This document shows positions 1 through 64,000 of a stretch of DNA of 64,000 nt, one piece after another. The notes beneath the pieces were generated by a model. The model worked only from the letters and a program-made list of their open reading frames with translations, had not been told where the DNA came from and made no database searches. Position 1 is the stretch's first letter; the number at the start of each line of letters is the position of its first letter. Made by a program: the position numbers and the translations under genes. Source of the stretch: Trichosphaerium sp. ATCC 40318 (lineage: Eukaryota > Protista > Tubulinea); NCBI GenBank assembly GCA_038496445.1, contig JALMLS010000455.1:940825-1004824 (forward strand), written 5' to 3'.

Positions 1-3000
1 CCATTTACATCATTGTTGTAAGACCATGTGTGCAAACATTTTTTTATCAATATTTATTTTAGATCGACTTATCACTATCAATTGTGGAACAAAAGAAGCA
101 CCTTAAGCACTGGGTTCATACCCTTAGTAAGTTTTTGCGTGGACAAGATGCAACATTCTACTCAGTGATAGTATATGGATCCAAGTTGGATATTCATTCA
201 GGAGACTTAGAAGCCAATAAAAAAGTGCTATACTCCTTCAATCAGATGAAATCGTCAGTGTACCTTGTGTTTTGCTTAGGCGGTACTTGTTTTATTTTAA
301 ACTAAGTAAGTCTCCTAATGTTGTTTCAAAAGGTATCTCTGGTCTTGAGAAGCAATTGAAGCGTCAAGCAAAATACATGAAGTCACAATACCCAAAAGTA
401 CCAACTCTCTATGACAAAGTACAAAAAGCATTAAAGAAAGCAGTTGCGAAAAAAGATAGATTGAAGGGTAACATCATATCAATGTACGTTGAGTATCATC
501 AGACACAGATGAATAACATTTTGATAGTGAACAAGTCATCAAACTATTACCTGAAACTTGTAAAATGGCTCCAATTGAGTTGGTTGCCTCGTTAAATTAC
601 CTTCACTCTATTGGTAGCATTATGTTTGATGAGGTACTGCAACCTTTTCTACGAGCTTGAATTTGATTTAATTATCCTCTAGTCATCATACATGTTGTGT
701 TTAGACCCTCCCATTCTATCTCGTATTATGAGTGTCTTTGTTGCTCCTACAGAACACCTGAACAGACTATTGAATGACAATTCTCGAAATCACTGTGCTG
801 TATTCACTTATGCAGAGGCCCATTATCGCATCTCAAAAGTATTCAAAAAGTGTACAATGGTTGAAGTGAAGCAAGTGATGAGATTCTTGGTTGAACTGTC
901 ATTTTGTGTTCGCTTGACAATAGAAGAAAAGGTAACACTTCATAACACGTTTTTATTGGTACATTGTTTAGTTATGGTTTAGAAAGTGTATGGTTCAGAT
1001 GGATACATCATAATTTCATTATTGCCAAAAGCTGATATGTTGTACTTTCCACCCATGACAGAAAAGGAGTCCAGTATCAATCTAGTTAAACACAGAAATG
1101 AGAAATTATCCATATTTTCTAAAGTGTTTTACTTGAGCAAGTTACCATCAAAGTGGAGGTTACTATCATTCATACCTAAAAAAGACAATAGGTTTGTAAT
1201 CAAGACAATTAAAGCAATCAAGAAAAATTCAAAGACTCAAACAATAGTACGTTTAAACGTTCAGTTTTTGGTACTTTCTTTTTTTAATTTACATAGTCAC
1301 TTCCTGGTAAATATGAGCTCATATCAAGCGTTCCAAATTTCTTGGCTTATCAATTTACTTCCCCAGAATTGTCAATAGATGTGTTTAATAACTTGCAAAC
1401 AAGATTAAGAGGTAAGCGCCGAAGTAATGTTGTATTTATGCTTACAAAATATCTAGAGTTCCACAACAAAGAGTTCCGCCTATTTTCAAATCTGATTGTA
1501 TTGAATGATTTTTATGGTAACACAATTGTGCTGTACTATAATAACCTTGCCATAAATATTGTGATCAGAGGCAAGGTGCCATGGTTATGGAAGGTACAAT
1601 AGCAAATATCATAGTTAAGTATTGTAAGTATTCATCTATGTTTAGAAATGTATTGGATCATACTTAGCACCATTGGAAGGTAAACAAGTTCAGCTATGCC
1701 CTGCAAGTATTCAAAACGGTCACATTGTTGTTGCTACAAAACCTCCATATAAGTTTGAACAAACAGGTAACCACAAATGTGAAGGTCAACTTTACTTACA
1801 ACAATCTGATAGGAGATATTGTCACTGCCTCTCACTTGAAAGAGGGCTTTCCTGTTCTGATAAAAAGCCGAAATAGCTTTTGGAGCAGTCTCAACGGTGA
1901 ACAATTCTTAACACAAGGCGATTGGAAACAGAATTCCCAAAAGTATCCAGGTTTGAGATGGACTTCTCTCACAAGCAACGAAACAACTAAAGTATGTGTA
2001 ACACTTGGCATTCTGACTTGGTATTTCATCTTTGCTGACTGAATCTAAAAAGGAGCGTTGTGATGAGTACTTGAGAGCTCGCAATATGTTCTACAAGTTT
2101 ATGGGTACTGAGAGTGAGTCGTTCTTTAAACTTGAAAAGATTGTATTCTTTGACAATCAAACACTTGAAGCTGCATTCCAAAAAAAATATGAACAGCTCG
2201 TTGCTAAAGTACTTCAATCTAAATCTTCAGGTAAGTGATTGAACATTTGCTAGCAATTCTTATTAATCCATCATTTAGATATTAACGATAGCAGTTTGAG
2301 TGCAGTTGATAAAAATAAAATTGAAGCACAAGAACGTACAATGAACCATTTGAAAAACTACACTCTTCGTGTTTCTGGTAATGAGCAAATCAATCTCATT
2401 GGTGGGTTTCATGGTACAACAGAGGTACTGTCATCATATTAAGTATGCTACTTATACGCACGCATAGGATACCAGTTTCTTAATTGCGACAAACAACTTC
2501 AGAGAGCCAACAAAATCAAAAGACAAGAAAGATGAAGGATTCTTTGGTACTACATTTAAAAACCTTACCTTTCAACACCACAGCTAACAATTTAACAAAG
2601 GGAATGGTATCTACTTTACACAATACCCTGATTACGGTACTTGTCTATAATGTCATGTATATTGGAGTTAATAGAGCTGTTGTAGGAAAGGTATATGCTG
2701 AGTGGGAAAAGACAGATACTCCTTGCATGTTGATATCGTGGGTGATGATGGGAAAACCCTATCCAGCTACTGAGGTTCCAAGCCCAAACAATTCAAACAG
2801 CCTCTATGGAAAAGGATGCAAGGTAATCCATTGAAATTACACACTAGCTGTGGTGTAACAATGTAAAAATAGGATGGATACGATTCACACTATGCCATTG
2901 TTAAAAAAACAACAAGTGCTCGCAATTGTTATCCTTGTAAAAAACATGAAAAACCAGACTTTGATGAAATTGTTGTATTCTCCAACAAACAAGTACAGTC

Positions 3001-3594
3001 GCCACAATTACTATTATTTATTTAACTTTTTTAATCAGATTCTTCCGAGATACCTTGTTTATTATCAAAGCACAAACACTATCAATCTTGAACAGTTCAA
3101 CATCAAGTACAGAGATGCAAAGTGTCTCATCTTATGGGTTGATGATAACTTATCCAATGAGAACAAAGAGATTGTGAAGCGATTGAAAGCTCGTCCAAAG
3201 AAAACTGAGGCACTTAACAGATATCACAGGTGTTGCAGGGTTACTAACAACAATCTACAAGGTTTTGGAAATGATGTCATCCTCAGAGGTTTTGGCATGG
3301 CTTCAAAAGTTTAAAGGATATTGTAACAACAGGCTACGTATTATAACAAACAGGTACCGTAAAGGTGATGGAGATGAGAATGCAGCAGAGCACTTGGTGA
3401 AAAGTATAATTACGCAAAATAAGAAATGGAGTAAAATACCTATTCTTGTGTTTTGTGGTATGTGTTTTACAAACAACAATCGTAACATGCTCATATTTTT
3501 GATTTTAGGAAACAAATCAAGTGTCAAGTACCTCAAAAAGGAATACAAGAATGTTTCAGTCACAGATAATCCTGCAGATGTATTAGCTTTGTAA
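1..3594 (+). CDS. Roco-ART copy 1 (5'-truncated by window): end of Roc, COR, PARP-type ADP-ribosyltransferase, pseudo-receiver; multi-exon
   Basis: Spliced exons give IYIIV-IDLS...VIVYGSKLD (Roc G4), YLHSIGSIMFDE...LCLDPPILSRIM (COR), GGFHGTTE...GFFGNGIYFTQYPDYG...GYDSHY...FDEIVVFSNKQILPRYLVYY (ART), ILWVDDN...RIITNRYR...PILVFCG (REC-like); stop at 3592-3594. Confidence 0.85.
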
Positions 3595-16364: not shown

Positions 16365-19300
16365 TTACAAGTCTAGTACATCTGCAGGATTATCTGTGAC
16401 TGAAACATTCTTGTATTTCTTTTTGAGGTACTTGACTTTTGCTTTGTTTCCTAGATTCAAAAGATGAGCGTATTTAACATCAAATACAATTGATTGTTGT
16501 ATTACACATACCACAAAACACAAGAATAGGTATTTTACTCCATTTCTTATTTTGCTTAATTATACTTTTCACCAAGTGCTCTGCTGCATTCTCATCTCCA
16601 TCACCTTTACGGTACCTATTTGTTATAATACGTAGCCTGTTGTTACAATATCCTTTAAACTTTTGAAGCCAATCCAAAACCTCTGAGGATGATGTCATTG
16701 GCAAAACCTTCCGAGTGTTAGTACCCTTCAACATATTCTATTTGGTTTATGTACCTCTGTTTTCTTTGGCCGAGCTTTTAATAGTGTTGCAATATTTTTG
16801 TTCTCATTGGATAAGTTATCATCAACCCATAAGATGAGACACTTTGCATCTCTGTACTTGATGTTGAGCTGTTTCAGATTGATAGTGTTTGTGCTTTGAT
16901 AATAAACAAGGTATCTCGGAAGAATCTGTTAAAAGGATAGTTAGAAGCAACTGCCAAAGGGTTATTAAGAAGAATATGAGGTTTGTACTTGTTTGTTGGA
17001 GAATACAACAATTTCATCAAAGTCTGGTTTTTCATGTTTTTTACAAGGATAGCAAACGCGAGCACTTCCTTGTTTTTTAACAATAGCATAGTGTGAATCA
17101 TATCCATCCTATTTTTACATTGTTAGCCTAATGGGTAATTTCAATGGATTACCTTGCATCCTTTCCCATACAGGCTGTTTGGATCACAAGGGTCAGGAAA
17201 CTCAGTAGCTGGATAAGGTTTTCCCATCATCACCCACGATATCAACATACAAGGAGTATCTGTCTTGTTCCACTCAGCATACACCTTTCCTACAACAACT
17301 CTATTGTTAACTCCGAACATGACTAATAGCAGGTACCGTAATTGGGGTATTGTGTAAAGTAGGTACCTTTCCCTTTGTTAAATTATTAGAGATAAGGTGT
17401 TGAAAGGTAAGGTTTTTAAATGTAGTACCAAAGAATCCTTTGTCTTTCTTGTCTTTTGACTTTGTTGGGTCTCTGAAGTTGTTTGTTGCAATTAAGAAAC
17501 TGGTATCCTATGCGTGCGTATAAGTAGCATACTTAATATGACGACAGTACCTGTGTTGTACCATGAAACCCACCAATGAGATTGATTTGCTCATTACCAG
17601 AAACACGAAGAGTGTAGTTTTTTAAATGGTTCATTGTCCGTTCTTGTGCTTCAATTATATTTTTATCAACTGCACTCAAACTGCTATCGCTAATATCTAA
17701 ATGATGGATTAATAAGAATTACTAGCAAATGTTCACAATCACTTACCTGAAGATTTAGATTGAAGTACTTTAGCAACGAGCTGTTCATATTTTTTTTGGA
17801 ATGCAGCTTCAAGTGTTTGATTGTCAAAGAATACAATCTTTTCAAGTTTAAAGAACGACTCACTCTCAGTACCCATAAACTTGTAGAACATATTGCGAGC
17901 TCTCAAGTACTCATCACAACGCTCCTTTTTAGATCAGTCAGCAAAGATGAAATACAAAGTCAGAAAAAGTGTTACACATACTTTGGTTGTTTCGTTGCTT
18001 GCGAGAGAAGTCCATCTCAAACCTGGATACTTTTTCTTGTTCTCTTTCCAATCACCTTGTTTTAAAAATCGTTCACCATGAAGACTGCTCCACAAGCTAT
18101 TGTGGCTTATTGTGAGTACAGGAAAGCCCTTTTTCAAGTGAGAGGCAGTGACAATATCTCCTATCAGATTGTTGTAAGTAAAGTTGACCTTCACATTGTG
18201 GTTACCTGTTTGTTCAAACTTATATGGAGTTTTTATAGCAACAACAACGTGACCGTTTTGAATACTTGCAGGGCATAGCTGAACTTGTTTACCTTCCAAT
18301 GGTGCTAAGTATGATCCAATACATTTCTAAACATAGATGAATACTTAACTATGATATTGCTATTGTACCTTCCATAACCACGGCACCTTGCCTCTGATCA
18401 CAATGTTTATGGCAAGGTTATTATAGTACAGCACAATTGTGTTACCATAAAAATCATTCAATACAATCAGATTTGAAAATAGGCGGAACTCTTTGTTGTG
18501 GAACTCTAGATAATTTTGTAAGCATAAATACAACATTATTTCGGTGCTTTCCTCTTAATCTTGTTTGCAAGTTATTAAACACATCTATTGACAATTCTGG
18601 AGAAGTAAATTGATAAGCCAAGAACTTTGAAACAGTTGATATGTGCTCATATTTGTCGGTAAGTGACTAAAGGTTGTTTAGCAACAATAACAATAAACAA
18701 GAAAGCAAAGAAAAAATTGAGAAAAAAAACCAAAAGAGAACACGTGACTAAACGTACTATTTTTTGAGTCTTTGAATTTTTCTTGATTGTTTCAATCGTC
18801 TTGGTCTCAAAACTATCATCTTTTTTAGGTATGAATGATAGTAACCTCCACTCTGTTGCCAACTTGCTCAAGTAAAACACTTCAGAAAATATGGATAATT
18901 CCTCATTTCTATTTTTAACTAGATTGATACTGGACTCCTTTTCTGTCACAGGTGGAAAGTACAACATATCAGCTTTTGGCAATAATGAAATTATGATGTA
19001 TCCATCTGAGCCGTACACTTTCTAACCACAATAAGTAAATAATGTACCAAAAAAAAAACATGTTACGAAGTGTTACCTTTTCTTCTTTTGTCAAGCGAAC
19101 ACAAAATGACAGTTCAACCAAGAATCTCATCACTTGCTTCACTTCAACCATTGTACACTTTTTGAATACTTTTGAGATGCGATAATGGGCCTCTGCATCT
19201 GTGAATACAGCACAGTGATTTCGAGAATTGTCATTCAATAGTCTGTTCAGGTGTTCTGTAGGAGCAACAAAGACACTCATAATACGAGATAGAATGGGAG

Positions 19301-21555
19301 GGTCTAAACACAACATGTACGATGACTAGAGGATAATTAAATCAAATTCAAGTGCATAGAAAAGGTTTTAGGTAAGCAGTACCTCATCAAACATAATGCT
19401 ACCAATAGAGTGAAGGTAATTTAACGAAGCAACCAACTCAATTGGAGCCATTTTACAAGTTTCAGGTAATAATTTGATGACTTGTTCACTATTTTCATGT
19501 TATTCATCAGTGTTTCTGTATGATACTTCAACGTACATTGATATGATGTTACCCTTCAATCTATCTTTTTTCACAACTGCTTTCTTTAATGCTTTTTGTA
19601 CTTTGTCATAAAGAGTTGGTACTTTTGGGTATTGTGACTTCATGTATTTTGCTTGATGCTTCAATTGCTTTTCAAGATCAGAGATACCTTTTGAAACAAC
19701 ATTAGGAGCCTTGCTTAGTTAAAATAAAACGAGTACCGTCTAAGCAAAACACAAGGTACACTGATGATTTCATCTGATTGAAGGAGTATAGTGCTTTTTT
19801 ATTGTCTTCTAGGTCTCCTGCATGAATATCCAACTTGGATCCATATACTATCACTGAGTAGAATGTTCCATCTTGTCCACGCAAAAACTTACTAAGGGTA
19901 TGAACCCAGTGCTTAAGGTGCTTCTTTTGTTCTACAATTGATAGCGATAAGTCGATCTAAAAATAAATATTGATAAGAAAAGGTTTGAACACGTGGTTTT
20001 AGGATCTTACAACAATGACGTAAATAGCAAGTTGTTTTGCGAAAAAATACTTGTGAAGTCCTTTGTATTCCATCTGTCCAGCAAAGTCTAAAACAGTGAA
20101 TGATAAATTACCATATCTAATATGTATGTCAGTATAACATCTAAATATATTATTATCAAACACACAATAGAGAAGAGGTATCAAAGCCAACTGTTGAATC
20201 AACACTGTCATCTTTTTCGCCTGACAACATCTTTACTAAAGTTGTCTTTCCTAATATTTACGTTAATGTAAAGAAACTCATATTGCTTGAGGATACCTGA
20301 TCCTCCATGACCCACAACCAACAATTTTGCTTTCAGTTGCTTCATGTATTCATATTCTGTGTGATCCATACCAGAAGCAATAGTTGATGGCTTTTTTTGA
20401 GGGGACAACATTTTGTAATATTCAGTTTGAAATTGTTTTTTTGTAATGTTGTTTATCTTTATTGGTATCACACGTGCCCCTGGAATCTCACGTGCTACAG
20501 TTGTAACTAAGGTATTAATGTGAGTGCACAGTTAAATATGAGAACACTATTGGTATGTACCTTGATGTAATGATATCTCAGGGTCATGTAAACAAAGATC
20601 ATAAACAAATACCACATCACAGGCACAATTGTTTTCATCTGTGTATTGTCTTATCCGTTTGACAACTCGAGTGAACATCTCTTTTGCAACGATCTCAAAA
20701 ATTAAAGATTTTTGATATGATATTTTGAAACTGTCATTTGGTAAAGTAAAAACCGTGGAAGCTACAAACCAGTCATTCAGCTTTTTGAAATACTTGTTAT
20801 CTTCTGAAAATACATGCACATCTTTAACGTCTGTGGATGTACTTTTGGCGCAAATTATTGGCATTTTGAAAAAGGCGTGTTGATTGGGTTCTCCAGAAAT
20901 CTTGGTATCTGCCGGATTAAGAAACTTATTGTGCAAAAAGTCACCAATGTATTTTACGCCATCTGCCGAATAATACTCTCCTTTTCCTGTTCTCTTGCCA
21001 TCCACAAAGTCACCGATGTATTTGGTACCATCTGGCCAATGATACTCTCCTTTTCCTGTTCTCTTGCCATCTACAAAGTCACCGATGTATTTTTCGCCAT
21101 TTGGTGAATAATACTCTCCTTTTCCTGTTATCTTGCCATCCGCAAAGTCACCGATGTATTTGGTACCATCTAGCCAATAATACTCCCCTTTTCCTGTTAT
21201 CTTGCCATCCACAAAGTCACCAATGTATTTGGTACCATCTAGGCAATAAAACTCTCCTTTTCCTGTTCTCTTGCCATCCACAAAGTCACCGATATATGTG
21301 GTACCATTTTCATAACCTATACGTATTTTTGGTAATCATCACATAAAACACTCTCTTACCACTAACATCGTTATCACAGTACCATGTCTGTTCGCCTTTA
21401 CCATGTCGGATACCATTTTTTAAAGTCCCTTTGTAAAAACAACCCTCATCCAGAACGAATATTTTACCTACATAAGGATTATTGATAACAACTTCAAAAA
21501 AAAAAAGCCGCTTACCAAAAACCAAAAGATCGCCACAAGCGGATTTAATTTCCAT
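16365..21555 (-). CDS. Roco-ART copy 2: MORN (6 YIGDF units plus 1 leading)-linker-Roc-COR-ART-pseudo-receiver, multi-exon
   Basis: Same exon structure as copy 3; LLVVGHGGSG/KTT, STVGFD, DFAGQ, GSKLD; FHGTT, GKGTYFTQY, DEIVVF; WVDDN; no lesion noticed. Confidence 0.88.
20925..21310 (-). repeat. 69-bp tandem MORN-coding repeats (6 units)
   Basis: Units of KYIGDFVDGKxTGKGExYxxxG, 23 aa each. Confidence 0.9.
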
Positions 21556-40590: not shown

Positions 40591-41376
40591 TAACACATTG
40601 CAAACTGCGGCGAAAGGCGAAATAAACTTGGTATTCCGAAATAAGCAGTTCCCATAACACAAACATGATGAAAAATGATTGAGAGCACGTGCCAACAAAA
40701 GAAACATTGGGGCATTGAGGTTAGGAATGTACGTCTCCAAGATCATTCAGGAAATCAACATGTGCATACTTACAGAAGACAATTAATTTTGAAGGAGTAG
40801 AACAACGTAAGCTGATATTTGCTACAAAGTAAATTTATTTAAAAACTCCAAACTGAAACCTATTTTCAAACTCGAGCGAACAATCGCTTTCAAAATAAAT
40901 CCCCTATATGTGGGTTCACTAATTTAGCACAGTACCGGGCGGTAAACCGTTTTTGTTCTCGCACAGAACCGTCAACATTAGTAAACAAATCACGTGATTA
41001 TACAATAGCAAACACTGTCTGTTGGTTTGAGGTCTTATTCAGGTACGCTAGAATTTTGAAACGCGAATCTAGTCTTGGGTTCGCCTTCGCTTCTTGTTAA
41101 GAGTGGGCAATACAAACTCTATCCTGACGCTCTGTAGGGTTTTTGGCTTATATCCTCACGTAACCAACTTGACGCTTTTACATTTGTACGAGCATTTTAC
41201 TAGTACAAGTAATTTATCTATCGTTGAAAACACTTTTTGGTTTTTTTGTAAACTTTCACGTGCATAAATTTTAGCCAATTTTTTTTTTGTTTTCATTTTT
41301 GATTAGCTTATTTTTTTTAGCGAATAAAAAAGCACAGCCAGTTGGGGTTTGTGTTGTTTACAGTTGATCATAAACA

Positions 41377-44300
41377 ATGGACAAAAGTAAATCCGCTCAA
41401 GGCGATTTTTTAGTTTTTAGTAAGCGTCTTATTGTTTTTTTTGAAGTTGTTATCAATAATCCTTATGTAGGTAAAATATTAATTCTGGACAAGGGTTGTT
41501 TTTACAAAGGGACTTTAAAAAATGGTATCCGACATGGTAAAGGCGAACAGACATGGTACTGTGATAACGATGTTAGTGGTAAGAGAGTGTTTTTTGTGAT
41601 GATTACCAAAAATACATAGGCTATGAAAATGGTAGCAAATACATTGGTGACTTTGTGGATGACAAGAAAACAGGAAAAGGAGAGTATTATTGGCCAAATG
41701 GTAACAAATACATCGGTGACTTTGTGGATGATAAGATAGCAGGAAAAGGAGAGTATTATTGGCCAGATGGTACCAAATATATTGGTGACTTTGTGGATTA
41801 CAAGAGAACAGGAAAAGGAGAGTATTATTGGCCAGATGGTTACAAATACATTGGCGACTTTGTGGATGACAAGAGAACAGGAAAAGGAGAGTATTATTGG
41901 CCAAATGGTACCAAATACATTGGCGACTTTGTGGATGACAAGTTTACAGGAAAAGGAGAGCTTTATTATTATTGGCCAGGTGGTAGAAAATACATTGGTG
42001 ACTTTGTGGATGACAAGTTAACAGGAAAAGGAGAGCTTTATTGGCCAGATGGTAGAAAATACATTGGTGACTTTGTGGATGACAAGAGAACAGGAAAAGG
42101 AGAGTTTTATTGGCCAGATGGTAAAAAATACATTGGTGACTTTGTGGATGGCAAGAGAACAGGAAAAGGAGAGTTTTATTGGCCAAATGGTAGCAAATAC
42201 ATCGGTGACTTTGTGGATGGCAACAGAACAGGAAAAGGAGAGCATTATTCACCAAGTGGTAGCAAATACATTGGTGACTTTGTGGATGGCAAGTTTCTTA
42301 ATCCGGCAGATACCAAGATTTCTGGAGAACCCAATCAACACGCCTTTTTCAAAATACCAATAATTTATACCAAAAGTACATCCACAGACATTAAAGATGT
42401 GTATGTATTTTTAAAAGATATGAAATATTTCAAGAAGCTGAATGACTGGTTTATAACTCCCACGTTTATTACTTTACCAAATGACACTTTCAAAATATCA
42501 TGTCAAAAATCCTTAATTTTTGAGATCCTTTCAAAAGAGACATTCACTCGAGTTGTTGAACGAATAAGACAACACACAGATGAACACAATTGTGTCTGCG
42601 ATGTGGTATTTGTTTATGATCTTTGTTTACATGACCCTGAGATATCATTACATCAAGGTACACACCAACAGTATTCTCATATTTAACTGTGCACTCACAT
42701 TAATACCTTAGTTACAACTGTAGCACGTGAGATTCCAGGGGCACGTGTGATACCAATTAAGATAAATGACATTACAAAAGAACAATTTCAAGGTGAATAT
42801 TACAGATCGTTGTCCCCTCAAAAAAAGCCATCAACTATTGCTTCTGGTATGGATCACACAGAATATGAATACATGAAGCAACTGAAAGCAAAATTGTTGG
42901 TTGTGGGTCATGGAGGATCAGGTATCCTCAAGCAATATGAGTTTCTTTACATTAACGTAAATACTAGGAAAGACAACTTTAGTAAAGATGTTGTCAGGTG
43001 AGAAAGATGACAGTGTTGATTCAACAGTTGGCTTTGATACCTCTTCTCTATTGTGCGTTTGTTTGATATTCTATATGAGACATAACACTGACACATGTAG
43101 ATATGGTAATATATCATTCACTGTTTTAGACTTTGCTGGACAGATGGAATACAAAGGACTTCACAAGTATTTTTTCACAAAACAACTTGCCATTTACGTC
43201 ATTGTCGTACGTCTTAAGACCACGTGCACAAACATTTTCTTATCAATATTTATTTTTAGATTGACTTATCACTATCAATTGTGGAACAAAAGAAGCACTT
43301 GACACACTGGGTTCATACCCTTAGTAAGTTTTTGCGTGGCCAAGATGGAACATTCTACTCAGTGATAGTATATGGATCCAAGTTGGATATTCATTCAGGA
43401 GACTTAGAAGACAATAAAAAAGCACTATACTCCTTCAATGGGATGAAATCGCCAGTGTACCTTGTGTTTTGCTTAGATGGTACTCATTTTATTTTAAACT
43501 AAGCAAGTTTCCTAATGTTGTTTCAAAAGGTATCTCTGATCTTGAGAAGCAATTGAAGCGTCAGGCAAAATACATGAAGTCACAATACCCAAAAGTACCA
43601 ACTCTTTATGACGAAGTACAAACAGCATTAAAGAAAGCAGTTGTGAAAAAGGATAAATTGAAGGGTAACATCTTATCATTGTACGTTGAAGTATCATACA
43701 TAAACACTGACGAATAACATTTTCATAGTGAACAAGTCATTAAACTATTACCTAAGACATGTAAAATGGCTCCAATTGAGTTGGTTGCTTCGTTAAATTA
43801 CCTTCACTCTATTGGTAGCATTATGTTTGATGAGGTACTGCTGCTTACCTAAAACCTTTTCTTTGTGCTTGAATTTGATTTAATTATCCTCTAGTCATCA
43901 CACATGTTGTGTTTAGACCCTCCCATTCTATCTCATATTATGAGTGTCTTTGTTGCTCCTACAGAACACCTAAACAGACTATTGAATGACAAGTCTAGAA
44001 ATCACTGTGCTGTATTCACAGATGCAGAGGCCCATTATCGCATCTCAAAGGTATTCAAACAGTGTACAATGGTTGAAGTGAAGCAAGTGATGAGATTCTT
44101 GGTTAAATTGTCATTTTGTGTTCGCTTGACAAAAGAAGAAAAGGTAACACTTTGTAACATATTTTTTTTATTGGTACATTATTTACTTACTGTGGTTAGA
44201 AAGTGTACGGCTCAGATGGATATGTCATAATTTCATTATTGCCAAAAGCTGATATGTTGTACTTTCCACCTGTGACAGAAAAGGAGTCCAGTATCAATCT

Positions 44301-46874
44301 AGTTAAAGAAGGAAAGGAGAAATTATCCATATTTTCTGAAGTGTTTTACTTGAGCAAGTTGCAAACAGAGTGGAGGTTACTATCATTCATACTTAAAAAA
44401 GATGATAGTTTTGAGACCAAGACGATTAAAACAATCAAAAAAACTTCTAATAGTCAAAAAATAGTACGTTTAGTCACGTGTTCTCTTTGGTTTTTTTTCT
44501 CAATTTTTTCTTTGCTTTCTTGTTTATTGTTATTGTTGCTAAACAACCTTTAGTCACTTCCCGACAAATATGAGCACATATCAGCCGTTTCAAAGTTCTT
44601 GGCTTATCAATTTACTTCTCCAGAAATGTCAATAGATGTGTTTAATAACTTGCAAACAAGATTAAGAGGAAAGCACCGAAATAATGTTATTTATGCTTAC
44701 AAAATATCTAGAGTTCCACAACAAAGAGTTCCGCCTATTTTCAAATCTGATTGTATTGAATGATTTTTATGGTAACACAATTGTGCTGTACTATAATAAC
44801 CTTGCCATAAACATTGTGATCAGAGGCAAGGTGCCGTGGTTATGGAAGGTACGATAGCAAATATCATAGTTAAGTATTGTCATAATTCATATCTATGTTT
44901 AGAAATGTATTGGATCATACTTAGCATCATTGGAAGGTAAACAAGTCCAGCTATGCCCTGCAAGTATTCAAAACGGTCACATTGTTGTTGCTACAAAACC
45001 TCCATATAAGTTTGAACAAACAGGTAACCACAATGTGAATGTCAACTTTGCTTACAACAACCTGATAGGAGATATTGTCACTGCCTCTCACTTGAAAGAG
45101 GGCTTTCCTGTTCTGACAATAAGCCGAAATAGCTTTTGGAGCAGTCTTCATGGTGAACAATTTTTAACACAAGGCGATTGGAAAGAGAACAAGAAAAAGT
45201 ATCCAGGTTTGAGATGGACTTCTCTCACAAGCAACGAAACAACTAAAGTATGTGAAACACTTTTCTAACTTGGCATTCAGACTTTGTATTTCATCTTTGC
45301 TGACTGATCTAAAAAAGGAGCGTTGTGATGAGTACTTGAGAGCTCGCAATATGTTCTACAAGTTTATGGGTACTGAGAGTGAGTCGTTCTTTAAACTTGA
45401 AAAGATTGTATTCTTTGACAATCAAACACTTGAAGCTGCATTCCAAAAAAAATATGAACAGCTTGTTGCTAAAGTACTTCAATCTAAATCTTCAAGTAAG
45501 TGATTGTGAACATTTGCTAGCAATTCTTATTAATCCATCATTTAGATATTAACGATAGCAGTTTGAGTGCAGTTGATAAAAAGAAACTTGAAGCACAAGA
45601 ACGGACAATGAACCATTTGAAAAACTATATTCTCCGTGTTTCTGGTAATGAGCAAATCAATCTCATTGGTGGGTTTCATGGCACAACAGAGGTACTGTCA
45701 TCATATTAAGTATGCCACTTATACGCACACATAGGATACCAGTTTCTTAATTGCGACCAACAACTTCAGAGAGCCAACAAAGTCAAAAGACAAGAAGAAA
45801 GATGAAGGATTCTTTGGTACAACGTTTACATTACTGCTTTTTTCAATGTGCACGTGTCTAATTTACTGTATTACAAAGGGAATGGCATCTACTTTACACA
45901 ATACCCAGACTACGGTACGTGTTTATAGTCATGCGCTTGAAGTTAATAGAGCTGTTGTAGGAAAGGTGTATGCTGAGTGGAACAAGACAGATACTCCTTG
46001 TATGCTGATATCGTGGGTGATGATGGGAAAACCTTATCCAGCTACTGAGGTTCCTAACTTTGATGATCCAAACAGCCTGTATGGAAAAGGATGCAAGGTA
46101 ATCCATTGAAATTACCCATTAGGCTAACAATGTAAAAATAGGATGGATACGATTCACACTATGCCATTGTTAAAAAAAAAACAAGTGCTCGCAATTGCTA
46201 TCCTTGTAAAAAACATGAAAAACCAGACTTTGATGAAATTGTTGTATTCTCCAACAAACAAGTACTAATTCACCACAGTTATTTTAATTAACATTCTATT
46301 GTAAAAGATTCTGCCGAGATACCTTGTTTATTATCAAAGCACAAATACTATCAATCTATCACAGTTCAACATCAAGTACAGAGATGCAAAGTGTCTCATC
46401 TTATGGGTTGACGATAACTTATCCAATGAGAACAAAGAGATTGTCAAGCTATTAAAAGCTCGGCCAAAGAAAACAGAGGTACACAAACCAAATGGAATAT
46501 GTTGAAGGGGTACTAACACTCCAAAAGGTTTTGTCAATGATGTCATCCTCAGAGGTTTTGGGATGGCTTCAAAAGTTTAAAGGATATTGTAATAACAGGC
46601 TACGTATTATAACAAACAGGTACCGTAAAGGTGATGGCGATGAGAATGCAGCAGAGCACTTGGTGAAAAGTATAATTAAGCAAAATAAGAAATGGAGTAA
46701 AATACCTATTCTTGTGTTTTGTGGTACGTGTGTAACACAACAACAATCGATTGTATCGATGTTAAACATGCTCATATTTTGAATCTAGGAAACAAAGCAA
46801 AAGTCAAGTACCTCAAAAAGAAATACAAGAATGTTTCAGTCACAGATAATCCTGCAGATGTATTAGCCTTGTAA
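41377..46874 (+). CDS. Roco-ART copy 3 (complete): MORN (10 YIGDF units plus 1 leading)-linker-Roc-COR-PARP-type ART-pseudo-receiver, multi-exon
   Basis: MORN ~41500-42297; Roc KLLVVGHGGSG/KTT, STVGFD, LDFAGQ, GSKLD; COR YLHSIG, LDPPIL, ISLLP, FNNLQTRL, IVIRG; ART H(45677) Y(45890) E(46235); REC-like 46395-46874. Confidence 0.9.
41628..42297 (+). repeat. 69-bp tandem MORN-coding repeats (10 units; one with a 6-nt insertion)
   Basis: Recurrent aaatacattggtgactttgtggatgacaagagaacaggaaaaggagag units. Confidence 0.92.
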
Positions 46875-47084
46875 ACAAACCCAAGTTTAACTAAAAACAT
46901 ATCACAGATCATAGCGATTTCATTAGACTTTATACGCTACGAATCCCTTTCATTGAGTACCGACTAACTTGTCAGGGATAGAACAGGACAATGTTCACCT
47001 TTTTTCTCAATAAACCAAAGTCTTCGTTTTAGCTTGAAGATTAATTTATTTTTTTTTGTTAATTCTGTACAATCGGTTCTATTT

Positions 47085-58696: not shown

Positions 58697-61600
58697 TTAC
58701 AAAGCTAATACATCTGCAGGACTGTCTGTGACTGAAACATTCTTGTATTTCTTTTTGAGGTACTTGACTTTTGCTTTGTTTCCTAGATTCAAAAATATGA
58801 GCATGTTTAACATCAATACAATCGATTGTTGTTGTGTTACACACATACCACAAAACACAAGAATAGGTATTTTACTCCATTTCTTATTTTGCTTAATTAT
58901 ACTTTTCACCAAGTGCTCTGCTGCATTCTCATCGCCATCACCTTTACGGTACCTGTTTGTTATAATACGTAGCCTGTTGTTACAATATCCTTTAAACTTT
59001 TGAAGCCATGCCAAAACCTCTGAGGATGACATCATTGGCAAAACCTTTTGGAGTGTTAGTACCCCTTCAACATATTCTATTTGGTTTGTGTACCTCTGTT
59101 TTCTTTGGCCGAGCTTTTAATAGCTTTACAATCTCTTTGTTCTCATTGGATAAGTTATCGTCAACCCATAAGATGAGACACTTTGCATCTCTGTACTTGA
59201 TGTTGAACTGTGATAGATTGATAGTGTTTGTGCTTTGATAATAAACAAGGTATCTCGGAAGAATCTTTTACAATAGGATGTTAATTAAAATAACTATGGT
59301 GAATTAGTACTTGTTTGTTGGAGAATACAACAATTTCATCAAAGTCTGGTTTTTCATGTTTTTTACAAGGATAGCAATTGCGAGCACTTGTTTTTTTTTT
59401 AACAATAGCATAGTGTGAATCGTATCCATCCTATTTTTACATTGTTACACCACAACTAATAGGTGATTTTAATGGATTACCTTGCATCCTTTTCCGTAGA
59501 GGCTGTTTGGATCATGAAGGTTAGGAACCTCAGTAGCTGGATAGGGTTTTCCCATCATCACCCACGATATCAGCATACAAGGAGTATCTGTCTTGTTCCA
59601 CTCAGCATACACCTTTCCTACAACAGCTCTATTAGCTTCAAGCGCATGACTATAAACACGTACCATAGTCTGGGTATTGTGTAAAGTAGATACCATTCCC
59701 TTTGTAATACAGTAAATTAGACACGTGCACATTGAAAAAAGCAACAGTAATGTAAACGTTGTACCAAAGAATCCTTCATCTTTCTTGTCTTTTGACTTTG
59801 TTGGCTCTCTGAAGTTGTTGGTTGCAATTAAGAAACTGGTATCCTATGTGTGCGTATAAGTGGCATACTTAATATGATGACAGTACCTCTGTTGTGCCGT
59901 GAAACCCACCAATGAGATTGATTTGCTCATTACCAGAAACACGAAGAGTGTAGTTTTTCAAATGGTTCATTGTCCGTTCTTGTGCTTCAAGTTTCTTTTT
60001 ATCAACTGCACTCAAACTGCTATCGCTAATATCTAAATGATGGATTAATAAGAATTGCTAGCAAATGTTCAATCACTTACTTGAAGATTTAGATTGAAGT
60101 ACTTTAGCAACGAGCTGTTCATATTTTTTTTGGAATGCAGCTTCAAGTGTTTGATTGTCAAAGAATACAATCTTTTCAAGTTTAAAGAACGACTCACTCT
60201 CAGTACCCATAAACTTGTAGAACATATTGCGAGCTCTCAAGTACTCATCACAACGCTCCTTTTTAGATCAGTCAGCAAAGATTAAATACCAAGTCAGAAA
60301 AAGTGTTACACATACTTTGGTTGTTTCGTTGCTTGTGAGAGAAGTCCATCTCAAACCTGGATACTTTTTCTTGTTCTCTTTCCAATCGCCTTGTGTTAAA
60401 AATTGTTCACCATGAAGACTGCTCCAAAAGCTATTTCGGCTTATTGTCAGAACAGGAAAGCCCTCTTTCAAGTGAGAGGCAGTGACAATATCTCCTATCA
60501 GATTGTTGTAAGTAAAGTTGACCTTCACATTTGTGGTTACCTGTTTGTTCAAACTTATATGGAGGTTTTGTAGCAACAACAATGTGACCGTTTTGAATAC
60601 TAACAGGGCATAGCTGGACTTGTTTACCTTCCAATGGTGCTAAGTATGATCCAATACATTTCTAAACATAGATGAATACTTAACTATGATATTTGTTATC
60701 GTACCTTCCATAACCATGGCACCTTGCCTCTGATCACAATGTTTATGGCAAGGTTATTATAGTACAGCACAATTGTGTTACCATAAAAATCATTCAATAC
60801 AATCAGATTTGAAAATAGGCGGAACTCTTTGTTGTGGAACTCTAGATATTTTGTAAGCATAAATACAACATTATTTTGGTGCTTCCCTCTTAATCTTGTT
60901 TGCAAGTTATTAAACACATCTATTGATATTTCTGGAGAAGTAAATTGATAAGCCAAGAACTTTGAAACGGCTGATATGTGCTCATATTTGTCGGTAAGTG
61001 ACTAAAGGTTGTTTAGCAACAATAACAATAAACAAGAAAGCAAAGGAAAAATTGAGAAAAAAAAAATAGAAAGAACGTGATTCTAAACGTACTATTTTTT
61101 GAGTCTTTGAATTTTTTTTGATTGTTTTAATCGTCTTGGTCACAAAACTATTATCTTTTTTAGGTATGAATGATAGCAACCTCCACTTTGTTGGCAACTT
61201 GCTCAAGTAAAACACTTCAGAAAATATGGATAGTTTCTCCCTGTGTTTAACTAGATTGATATTGGACTCCTTTTCTGTCACAGGTGGAAAGTACAACATA
61301 TCAGCTTTTGGCAATAATGAAATTATGATGTATCCATCTGAGCCGTACACTTTCTAACCACAATAAGTAAATAATGTACCAATAAAAAAAATATGCTATG
61401 AAGTGTTACCTTTTCTTCTTTTGTCAAGCGAACACAAAATGACAATTTAACCAAGAATTTCATCACTTGCTTCACTTCAACCATTGTACAGTTTTTGAAT
61501 ACCTTTGAGATGCGATAATGGGCCTCTGCATCTGTGAATACAGCACAGTGATTTCGAGACTTTTCATTCAATAGTCTGTTCAGGTGTTCTGTAGGAGCAA

Positions 61601-64000
61601 CAAAGACACTCATAATATGAGATAGAATGGGAGGGTCTAAACACAACATGTGTGATGACTAGAGGATAATTAAATCAAATTCAAGCACAAAGAAAAGGTT
61701 TTAGGTAAGCAGCAGTACCTCATCAAACATAATGCTACCAATAGAGTGAAGGTAATTTAACGAAGCAACCAACTCAATTGGAGCCATTTTACAAGTTTCA
61801 GGTAATAGTTTGATGACTTGTTCACTATCAAAATGTTATTCATCTGTCTGTATGATACTTCAACGTACAATGATATGATGTTACCCTTCAATTTATCTTT
61901 TTTCACAACTGCTTTCTTTAATGCTTTTTGTACTTCGTCATAAAGAGTTGGTACTTTTGGGTATTGTGACTTCATGTATTTTGCTTGACGCTTCAATTGC
62001 TTTTCAAGATCAGAGATACCTTTTGAAACAACATTAGGAGACTTGCTTAGTTTAAAATAAAACGAGTACCATCTAAGCAAAACACAAGGTACACTGGCGA
62101 TTTCATCCCATTGAAGGAGTATAGTGCTTTTTTATTGTCTTCTAAGTCTCCTGAATGAATATCCAACTTGGATCCATATACTATCACTGAGTAGAATGTT
62201 CCATCTTGTCCACGCAAAAACTTACTAAGGGTATGAACCCAGTGCTTCAAGTGCTTCTTTTGTTCCACAATTGATAGTGATAAGTCAATCTAAAAATAAA
62301 TATTGATAAGAAATTATTTGTGCACGTGGTCTTAGGATCTTACAACAATGACGTAAATGGCAAGTTGTTTTGTGAAAAAATACTTGTGAAGTCCTTTGTA
62401 TTCCATCTGTCCAGCAAAGTCTAAAACAGTGAATGATATATTACCATATCTACATGTGTCAGTGTTATGTCTCATATAGAATATCAAACAAACGCACAAT
62501 AGAGAAGAGGTATCAAAGCCAACTGTTGAATCAACACTGTCATCTTTTTCACCTGACAACATCTTTACTAAAGTTGTCTTTCCTAATATTTACATCAATG
62601 TAAAGAAACTCATATTGCTTGAGCATACCTGATCCTCCATGACCCACAACCAACAATTTTGCTTTCAGTTGCTTCATGTATTCATATTCTGTGTGATCCA
62701 TACCAGAAGCAATAGTTGATGGCTTTTTTTGAGGGGACAACATTTTGTAATATTCAGTTTGAAATTGTTCTTTTGTAATGTTGTTTATCTTTATTGGTAT
62801 CACACGTGCCCCTGTAATCTCACGTGCTTTTATTGTAACTAAGGTATTAATGTGAGTGCACAGTTAAATATGAGAATACTGTTGGTATGTACCTTGATGT
62901 AATGATATCTCAGGGTCATGTAAACAAAGATCATAAACAAATACCACATCGCAGACACAATTGTGTTCATCTGTGTGTTGTCTTATTCGTTCAACAACTC
63001 GAGTGAATGTCTCTTTTGAAAGGATCTCAAAAATTAAGGATTTTTGACATGATATTTTGAAAGTGTCATTTGGTAAAGTAATAAACGTGGGAGTTATAAA
63101 CCAGTCATTCAGCTTCTTGAAATATTTCATATCTTTTAAAAATACATACACATCTTTAATGTCTGTGGATGTACTTTTGGTATAAATTATTGGTATTTTG
63201 AAAAAGGCCTGTTGATTGGGTTCTCCAGAAATCTTGGTATCTGCCGGATTAAGAAACTTGCCATCCACAAAGTCACCAATGTATTTGCTACCACTTGGTG
63301 AATAAAACTCTCCTTTTCCTGTTCTCTTGCCATCCACAAAGTCACCGATGTATTTGCTACCATTTGGCCAATAAAACTCTCCTTTTCCTGTTCTCTTGTC
63401 ATCCACAAAGTCACCAATGTATTTTTTACCATCTGGCCAATAAAACTCTCCTTTTCCTGTTCTCTTGTCATCCACATAGTCACCAATGTATTTTCTACCA
63501 TCTGGCCAATAAAGCTCTCCTTTTCCTGTTAACTTGTCATCCACAAAGTCACCAATGTATTTTCTACCACCTGGCCAATAATAATAAAGCTCTCCTTTCC
63601 CTGTAAACTTGTCATCCACAAAGTCGCCAATGTATTTGGTACCATTTGGCCAATAATACTCTCCTTTTCCTGTTCTCTTGTCATCCACAAAGTCGCCAAT
63701 GTATTTGTACCATCTGGCCAATAATACTCTCCTTTTCCTGTTCTCTTGTAATCCACAAAGTCACCAATATATTTGGTACCATCTGGCCAATAATACTCTC
63801 CTTTTCCTGCTATCTTATCATCCACAAAGTCACCGATGTATTTGTTACCATTTGGCCAATAATACTCTCCTTTTCCTGTTTTCTTGTCATCCACAAAGTC
63901 ACCAATGTATTTGCTACCTTTTCATAGCCTATGTATTTTGGTAATCATCACAAAAAACACTCTCTTACCACTAACATCGTTATCACAGTACCATGTCTGT
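58697..64000 (-). CDS. Roco-ART copy 4 (5' end beyond window); two 1-nt deletions in the MORN exon (possible pseudogene or sequencing error)
   Basis: All Roc/COR/ART/REC motifs present; relative to copy 3, single-base losses at ~63918 and ~63708 shift the frame. Confidence 0.82.
63255..63925 (-). repeat. 69-bp tandem MORN-coding repeats (10 units)
   Basis: Unit order nearly identical to copy 3. Confidence 0.9.

Follow-up and report, generated by a model that had tools for sequence, protein, structure and literature searches.

What kind of protein arises when MORN repeats, a Roc GTPase and an ADP-ribosyltransferase (ART)-like domain are placed on one polypeptide, and what might such a protein do? 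This question is raised by a gene of Trichosphaerium sp. ATCC 40318, found at positions 41377..46874 (forward strand) of a 64,000-nucleotide stretch of contig JALMLS010000455.1, hereafter called the window. A tblastn search of the window with the protein model of this gene gives four copies, designated A to D, among which the gene in question is copy C. In our best explanation, to which we assign a probability of roughly 60%, copy C is one spliced Roco gene encoding 11 MORN units, a region of about 180 residues, Roc, COR-A with a divergent COR-B-like part, a PARP-type domain carrying an H-Y-E triad and a pseudo-receiver, and its product would be a GTP-controlled enzyme working in the manner proposed below. 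The gene structure, the splicing, the domain identities and the multi-copy nature of the family make up the observed part of this explanation.

Splicing and domain order of copy C

Copy C consists of 23 exons and 22 introns and, once spliced, gives a single open frame of 1,442 codons plus the stop codon, with an in-frame TAA two codons upstream of the ATG at 41377. The introns are very short (41-90 nucleotides), as in a eukaryotic-looking gene, and the window is AT-rich, with about 36% G+C. The exon model was made by manual joining and then corrected twice on the basis of RNA data and the paralogue alignment: an extra 48-nucleotide intron was placed in Roc (43053-43100), and intron 12 was set at 44669-44711. 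The preliminary description of this locus, made from the sequence alone, had joined GT-AG-bounded exons into one protein. The single frame of 1,442 residues bears this out, except that the donor of intron 12 is GA in copy C; its exon list had also overlooked the intron in Roc. This GT-AG intron (43053..43100, forward strand), lying in frame between switch I and G3, is skipped by a contig over exons 4-7 from run X3. Its retention would insert 16 residues and no stop codon, and therefore two variants of the G domain may be produced by alternative splicing.

RNA evidence comes from contigs of the public runs X1, X3, X6 and X7 aligned to positions 41300-46950. Fifteen predicted introns are exactly skipped by contigs from X1, X3 and X6, and the upstream exon ends at three more are reproduced by loose ends of contigs from X1, X6 and X7, so that overall the RNA supports about 18 of the 22 introns. 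The intron at 45248-45317 is spliced, and the resulting joint, 45247/45318, couples the last exon after COR to the first of the ART exons; it is carried by a contig with no mismatch to copy C and with 35 letters on the far side. Another contig holds the joint 44848/44903, which links exons on the COR-B side, and contigs with zero mismatches to copy C also extend across introns at exon 15 and exon 22. Transcripts ending between COR and ART, as expected of two separate genes, are not seen, because the spliced contigs join the post-COR exon to the ART exon as well as the COR-B-side exons to each other.

Roc, COR, PARP and receiver assignments were made by comparing the spliced model with local profiles built from natural bacterial or viral family members, with shuffled sequences as controls. 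The members were fetched by DNA motif scans and samples of them verified with Pfam; on the query, Pfam was run on exon pieces only. For Roco proteins, the reference is 120 bacterial loci with the motif WDFGGQ[DE]x5Hx2F. All eight tested loci are LRR (leucine-rich repeat)-Roc-COR-A proteins by Pfam, seven of which have COR-B as well, and one carries an effector-associated domain.

The Roc GTPase occupies approximately residues 455-626 (42885..43597, forward strand) and contains G1 (GHGGSGKTT), switch I (STVGFD), G3 (DFAGQ) and G4 (GSKLD). The local Roc profile scores 45.5 bits on the spliced model (E = 3e-16), with 11.6 bits for the best shuffle, and phmmer against the bacterial Roco open reading frames (ORFs) gives a best E value of 8.5e-14. 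In Pfam, Roc is the top match of the exon spanning G2 to G3 (E = 1.3e-5, 25.8 bits, below the 27-bit cut-off), with Arf near behind; against PDB sequences, Arf comes first in the Roc exon and LRRK2 is also matched.

COR-A follows at residues 627-792 (43598..44259, forward strand). The Roc-COR profile covers residues 456-792 in a single alignment at 74-77 bits, and two kinds of shuffles separate the contribution of COR-A from that of Roc. When Roc is fixed and the rest is shuffled, the null is 45.1 ± 1.4 with a maximum of 55, leaving the real score 32 bits higher; when residues 455-640 are fixed, the null is 58.1 ± 1.5 with a maximum of 75.3, and the real score is 19 bits higher. In both tests, none of 1000 shuffles reaches the real score. 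Because COR-A comes directly after Roc, and this tandem defines the family, the gene is on sequence grounds a Roco-family GTPase.

The candidate COR-B and a linker are encoded by exons 11-14 (44260..45247, forward strand), at the position expected for COR-B. A search of 1.84 billion representative proteins revealed no relative of exon 14, and the AlphaFold2 model of this exon, with a predicted local distance difference test score of 41, is unusable. The three matches from that search, to Sushi, Big_5 and YDG repeat proteins, are sums of many tiny repeat matches and were judged to be chance.

The PARP-type domain (residues 1060-1303; 45318..46340, forward strand) has its H in GFHGT, its Y in GIYFTQ and its E in FDEIVVF. 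The reference in this case is 91 viral stretches with the motif WHG[ST]...GIYFA, all ten tested of which are Pfam PF00644, and the profile was made from 38 viral domains. The spliced model reaches 20.4 bits in hmmsearch (E = 1.9e-8), as against 8.2 for the highest-scoring of 2000 shuffles, and hhalign gives a probability of 92.5%, E = 5e-7 and a score of 48.8 against a null of 13.1 ± 2.6. In the alignment, GFHGT falls on WHGS, GNGIYF on GdGIYF and a second tyrosine on the tyrosine of the profile; towards the C-terminus, DEIVVF...Q..PRYLV falls on nEiivY..eQ..ikYlv. The H, Y and E fall on the columns of the reference triad, and none of the four copies has lost any of these residues. Profile comparison thus supports homology to the catalytic domain of PARP, with H-Y-E in register.

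In the same viral collection, five contigs (L007, L014, L028, L074 and L090) have very long ORFs of 2,400-3,000 residues with one or two PARP-like WHG[ST]...WGIYFA modules. Most of the viral motif matches are WGR-PARP genes of about 430 residues, unlike those long ORFs.

The remaining C-terminal tail, residues 1304-1442 (46341..46871, forward strand), carries the motifs ILWVDDN, RIITN and ILVFCG. It was compared with a profile of 71 receiver domains taken from 116 viral stretches with DxxxLDxxMPxx[DN]G, a motif that the query does not have; ten of ten tested stretches are PF00072. In hhalign the tail scores 23.9 (P = 6.5e-4), higher than any of the shuffles (11.0 ± 2.2, maximum 20), and the alignment spans beta-1 to beta-4 in the canonical order. 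At the end of beta-3, the phospho-acceptor position is occupied by the Asn of RIITN in all four copies, with no Asp, and Cys is found at the position of the conserved Thr/Ser. With moderate confidence, the tail can be regarded as a degenerate receiver-like domain.

At the N-terminus, exons 1-3 encode a leader and 11 MORN units of 23 residues each (41377..42290, forward strand; PF02493). Pfam detects MORN in exon 3 at E = 2e-49, with nine stretches passing, and by motif count copy C has 11 units and copy B has 7. Between the MORN array and the P-loop lies the pre-Roc region of about 180 residues (276-454; 42291..42884, forward strand), that is, at the place taken by LRR in most Roco proteins. 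This region has no Pfam match, and bacterial Roco ORFs give weak and scattered matches only.

Most of what the preliminary description had said of these domains agrees with the above results: the N-terminal MORN repeats, a complete Roc with all four motifs where they had been placed, and an H-Y-E ART domain. Its COR domain holds as to COR-A, by profile and by shuffles, while COR-B is without significant support; for its C-terminal receiver-like fold, the hhalign result is favorable and the overall support is weak.

Weak points of the model and the state of intron 12

Several observations speak against the explanation given at the outset. The RNA contigs are short, and most of them, at 95-99% identity, may stem from paralogues. 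A contig covering the whole gene is not seen, and the joint of exon 3 with exon 4, which would connect the MORN side to the Roc side, is absent among the joints shown. COR-B has no hidden Markov model (HMM) match, and its hhalign score, in the expected register, is 15.2 with a null of 11.9 ± 2.2, which is not significant. The hmmsearch result for the receiver-like tail is borderline with respect to the shuffles, its 6.7 bits ranking third of 2001. When 19 single exons and 10 stop-free stretches were compared with Pfam, MORN and the sub-threshold Roc were the only matches, with no COR, PARP or receiver; the non-matching exon pieces are too short for Pfam or PDB searches. Furthermore, the PARP reference was chosen by two motifs nearly shared by the query, and for this reason shuffles with three motifs fixed were run: the real HMM score was attained in 22 of 2000 cases (p of about 0.01), and the hhalign null rises up to 32.6 ± 4.3. 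Lastly, for copy C to keep its frame, either a GA-AG intron or a cryptic splice pair has to be used, as described below.

The motif-fixed shuffles therefore indicate that most of the PARP signal comes from the correctly spaced triad, with the remainder adding modest support. This leaves some room for the alternative that the enzyme-like part near the C-terminus is no homologue of PARP and owes its motifs to chance or to membership of a different ART-fold family, in agreement with the shuffles that equal the real profile score and with the single-exon Pfam and PDB searches, which give no match. Against it, the motifs have the right order and spacing and fall in register on those of PARP domains verified by Pfam, all four copies conserve them, and hhalign gives 92.5% with a score 13 standard deviations over the plain shuffles. 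We regard this alternative as very improbable.

Further searches with parts of copy C did not add relatives. In the PDB sequence search with five exon pieces, the matches outside the Roc exon are repeat matches only and were judged to be chance. The ART stretch has no match in a word-indexed protein search, and the ART exon has no usable match in the ESM Atlas; a metagenome scan with the ART/receiver exon gave a single match, a bacterial dehydrogenase-like ORF, also judged to be chance. Two viral scans with the receiver and COR exons found no match, and in-frame read-through of introns to join adjacent exons in the four copies yielded nothing useful for the ART region. Neither LRR before Roc nor a kinase after COR is found by Pfam on all exon pieces. 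The 3,080 viral and bacterial ORFs that were fetched include no combination of Roc with PARP, PARP with receiver, or Roc with receiver, and a PARP or receiver tail is found in none of the 120 sampled bacterial Roco ORFs. As to the surroundings, Rfam on the window and Pfam on ten large neighboring ORFs give no match.

Intron 12 (44669..44711, forward strand) is 43 nucleotides long in copy C. According to the four-copy alignment, its donor is GT in copy A and GG in D, and B and C have GA. The intron is 45 nucleotides long in A and D, where retention would keep the frame, and 43 and 46 nucleotides in C and B, respectively, where it would not. The interval 44669-44711 is exactly skipped by an X1 contig, which derives from another paralogue. 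A cryptic GT..AG pair at 44686-44728, of the same length as intron 12, would also rescue the frame of copy C. Either this organism may splice introns with G-N donors, or these copies may be failing.

In the latter case, copy C itself would be decaying: the change of GT to GA would block splicing of intron 12 and truncate the protein inside COR-B, while other members of the family work. The donor is GA in both B and C and kept as GT in A, the contig skipping the intron is not from copy C, and two neighboring copies are frameshifted, all of which fit with decay. On the other side, everything downstream of the intron is open and appears to be under purifying selection, the zero-mismatch contigs at exons 15 and 22 come from beyond it, and the cryptic pair would restore the frame. 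Decay of copy C is rather unlikely in our estimation. Donor variation is also seen elsewhere in the family: the intron at 46479-46527 has a GC donor in copy A and GT in the other copies.

Copy C beside known Roco, PARP and receiver proteins

Roco proteins have been studied mainly because of LRRK2. To our knowledge, kinases are the only outputs characterized among eukaryotic Roco proteins, and it is still debated how Roc-COR controls the enzyme fused to it. A natural Roc-COR wired to a PARP-type enzyme would mark this switch as a general controller of fused effectors, and ADP-ribosylation would be an output by which Roc-COR control could easily be assayed.

By reference to known Roco proteins, the following mechanism can be proposed for the product of copy C. 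Roc-COR would bind and hydrolyze GTP and thereby change its oligomeric or conformational state, and this change would control the C-terminally fused enzyme. The enzyme would transfer ADP-ribose from NAD+ onto a protein or onto itself, in place of phosphorylation. Probably, the MORN array positions the protein on a membrane or a partner. The dead receiver may be a structural, dimerising or autoinhibitory module rather than a phospho-acceptor.

Copy C resembles Roco proteins with kinase outputs (LRRK1/LRRK2 and Roco4, GbpC and Pats1 of Dictyostelium) in having N-terminal repeats, Roc followed by COR, a fused enzyme and a further C-terminal domain. In contrast to them, the enzyme is PARP-like, the repeats are MORN instead of LRR, ankyrin or armadillo, the C-terminus is receiver-like where WD40 is found in the kinase proteins, and COR-B is too divergent to be detected. 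It does not have the LRR-Roc-COR-kinase order of the LRRK-type proteins (group 2; Wauters et al., 2019). In the classification of Wauters et al. (2019; PMC6337361), Roco proteins fall into three topologies, and neither MORN nor PARP appears in any of them. In the searchable literature no paper combines Roco or Roc-COR with PARP, in line with the earlier statement that no characterized MORN-Roco protein with an ART is known.

A precedent for the arrangement as a whole is found in bacteria. Bacterial LRR-Roc-COR proteins carry at least 24 alternative C-terminal effector domains, such as TIR, caspase, trypsin and GT4, occur as many paralogues per genome and have been read as counter-invader or conflict systems (Kaur et al., 2021; PMC8195603). 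Roco proteins in general have been described as GTP-controlled scaffolds for fused effectors (PMC6337361; PMC8195603). The preliminary description had proposed a module of sensor, switch and effector analogous to immune receptors; this is a reasonable analogy, with the same logic published for bacterial LRR-Roc-COR proteins (PMC8195603), and so the idea is not new. Copy C can be looked upon as a eukaryotic version built of other parts. It shares with bacterial LRR-Roc(AP-GTPase)-COR proteins the repeats, Roc-COR, an exchangeable effector and multiple paralogues per genome, as well as sequence similarity in Roc and COR-A to the 120 reference ORFs. It differs from them in being eukaryotic and intron-rich and in having MORN for LRR, and an effector of PARP type is not named in the text of PMC8195603. 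Among the reference loci, a Calothrix protein (L120:2306-5710) has the order LRR-Roc-COR-A-COR-B and ends in the effector-associated domain EAD1.

The enzyme part agrees with the PARP/ARTD family (PF00644) in H-Y-E, GxGIYF, the second tyrosine and the C-terminal strand Q..P.YL[IV], all in register. Unlike those proteins, it has no WGR, regulatory, macro, WWE or zinc-finger partners and is fused to Roc-COR, and there is no alignment between the roughly 100 residues preceding its His and the viral PARP1-like set. The tail, for its part, aligns with Pfam-verified receivers in the DD motif of beta-1 and in the order of beta-3, beta-4 and helix. It departs from them in Asn for the phospho-acceptor Asp, Cys for Thr/Ser, weak similarity and the lack of a histidine kinase context.

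The paralogue family and its possible roles

Three further copies accompany copy C. Copy A (1..3594, forward strand), located by tblastn and DNA alignment, lacks its 5′ part at the start of the window. Copy B (16365..21555, reverse strand) is intact, with projected exons forming a single open frame of 1,346 residues. Copy D (58697..64000, reverse strand) is 96-99% identical to C and lacks its 5′ end at the end of the window. The exons of the four copies are 88-99% identical and most introns similarly so, and the duplicated unit is the gene with a few hundred bases.

While B and C are intact, A and D are frameshifted. A one-base insertion in exon 14 (CACAATG to CACAAATG) is common to A and D and results in premature stops, and the MORN exon of D has also lost a single base at each of two places; the frameshifts fall in 1646-1990 of A and in 60317-60661 and 63700-63930 of D. 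Because the downstream exons still look constrained, the frameshifts are read as recent or artefactual: these copies may be recent pseudogenes, products of gene conversion or assembly errors.

Ratios of nonsynonymous to synonymous substitution (dN/dS) between the paralogues, estimated by the Nei-Gojobori method from small counts, are 0.5-1.2 in MORN, 0.8-0.95 in the pre-Roc region, 0.1-0.4 in Roc, 0.3-0.5 in COR, 0.08-0.33 in ART and 0.15-0.43 in the receiver-like tail. As estimated from these ratios, Roc, ART and the tail are under purifying selection, and MORN and the pre-Roc region are relaxed and change freely. The G1-G4 motifs, the H-Y-E triad and the receiver motifs are identical across the copies, with the exception of GIYF, which is GTYF in B. 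The family is lineage-specific, with quick duplication and decay. This pattern fits a fast-turnover receptor family and is compatible with, and no proof of, a role in conflict or immunity.

Two roles of comparable likelihood can be considered for the family. One is ordinary signalling, in which MORN is a membrane anchor, the GTP-controlled PARP modifies cytoskeletal or trafficking targets in the way of the Dictyostelium Roco proteins with a kinase, and the expansion reflects specialization of paralogues. The catalytic core appears to be under purifying selection. Amoebozoan Roco proteins with very diverse accessory domains work in ordinary signalling (PMC6337361), with roles in chemotaxis, cytokinesis and trafficking (PMC6337361; see also PMC3128523). 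Very young tandem-like duplicates, frameshifts and changes of repeat number are, on the contrary, unusual for housekeeping signalling genes, and we hold the signalling role as a tentative possibility.

The other is that of an NLR-like receptor in immunity or conflict: MORN would sense a pathogen or non-self, Roc-COR would switch, and PARP would kill or raise an alarm by ADP-ribosylation or NAD+ depletion. Like NLR/STAND proteins, copy C has the tripartite order of repeat array, nucleotide switch and effector, and its paralogues are clustered with fast turnover; unlike them, its switch is a Ras-like Roc GTPase and not a STAND (NACHT or NB-ARC) ATPase. In favor of this role are the four clustered paralogues in the window, two of them frameshifted, the varying number of MORN units (11 vs. 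7), dN/dS of about 1 in MORN and the pre-Roc region with low values in the effector part, and the proposal of bacterial LRR-Roc-COR proteins with many effectors as conflict systems (PMC8195603). Against it, dN/dS of about 1, from small counts, also fits relaxed constraint, MORN arrays, better known as membrane or protein anchors, are equally likely to have that function here, and the metagenome and viral scans and the fetched ORFs yielded no viral or bacterial relative for the ART-receiver part. The immune role is plausible and, on balance, doubtful.

In its broader form, this proposal would make the genes a eukaryotic innate-immune family with a Roco GTPase rather than a STAND ATPase as its switch, in which hypervariable MORN repeats sense invaders and the PARP-type domain executes the response by ADP-ribosylation or NAD+ depletion; we consider this form unlikely. 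If true, it would link bacterial Roc-COR effector systems to eukaryotic immunity, and ADP-ribosylation would join the effector chemistries under a GTPase switch.

As a separate observation, the hexamer CACGTG occurs 49 times in the whole window, within genes as well as between them, where shuffles lead one to expect 8.3 ± 2.7.

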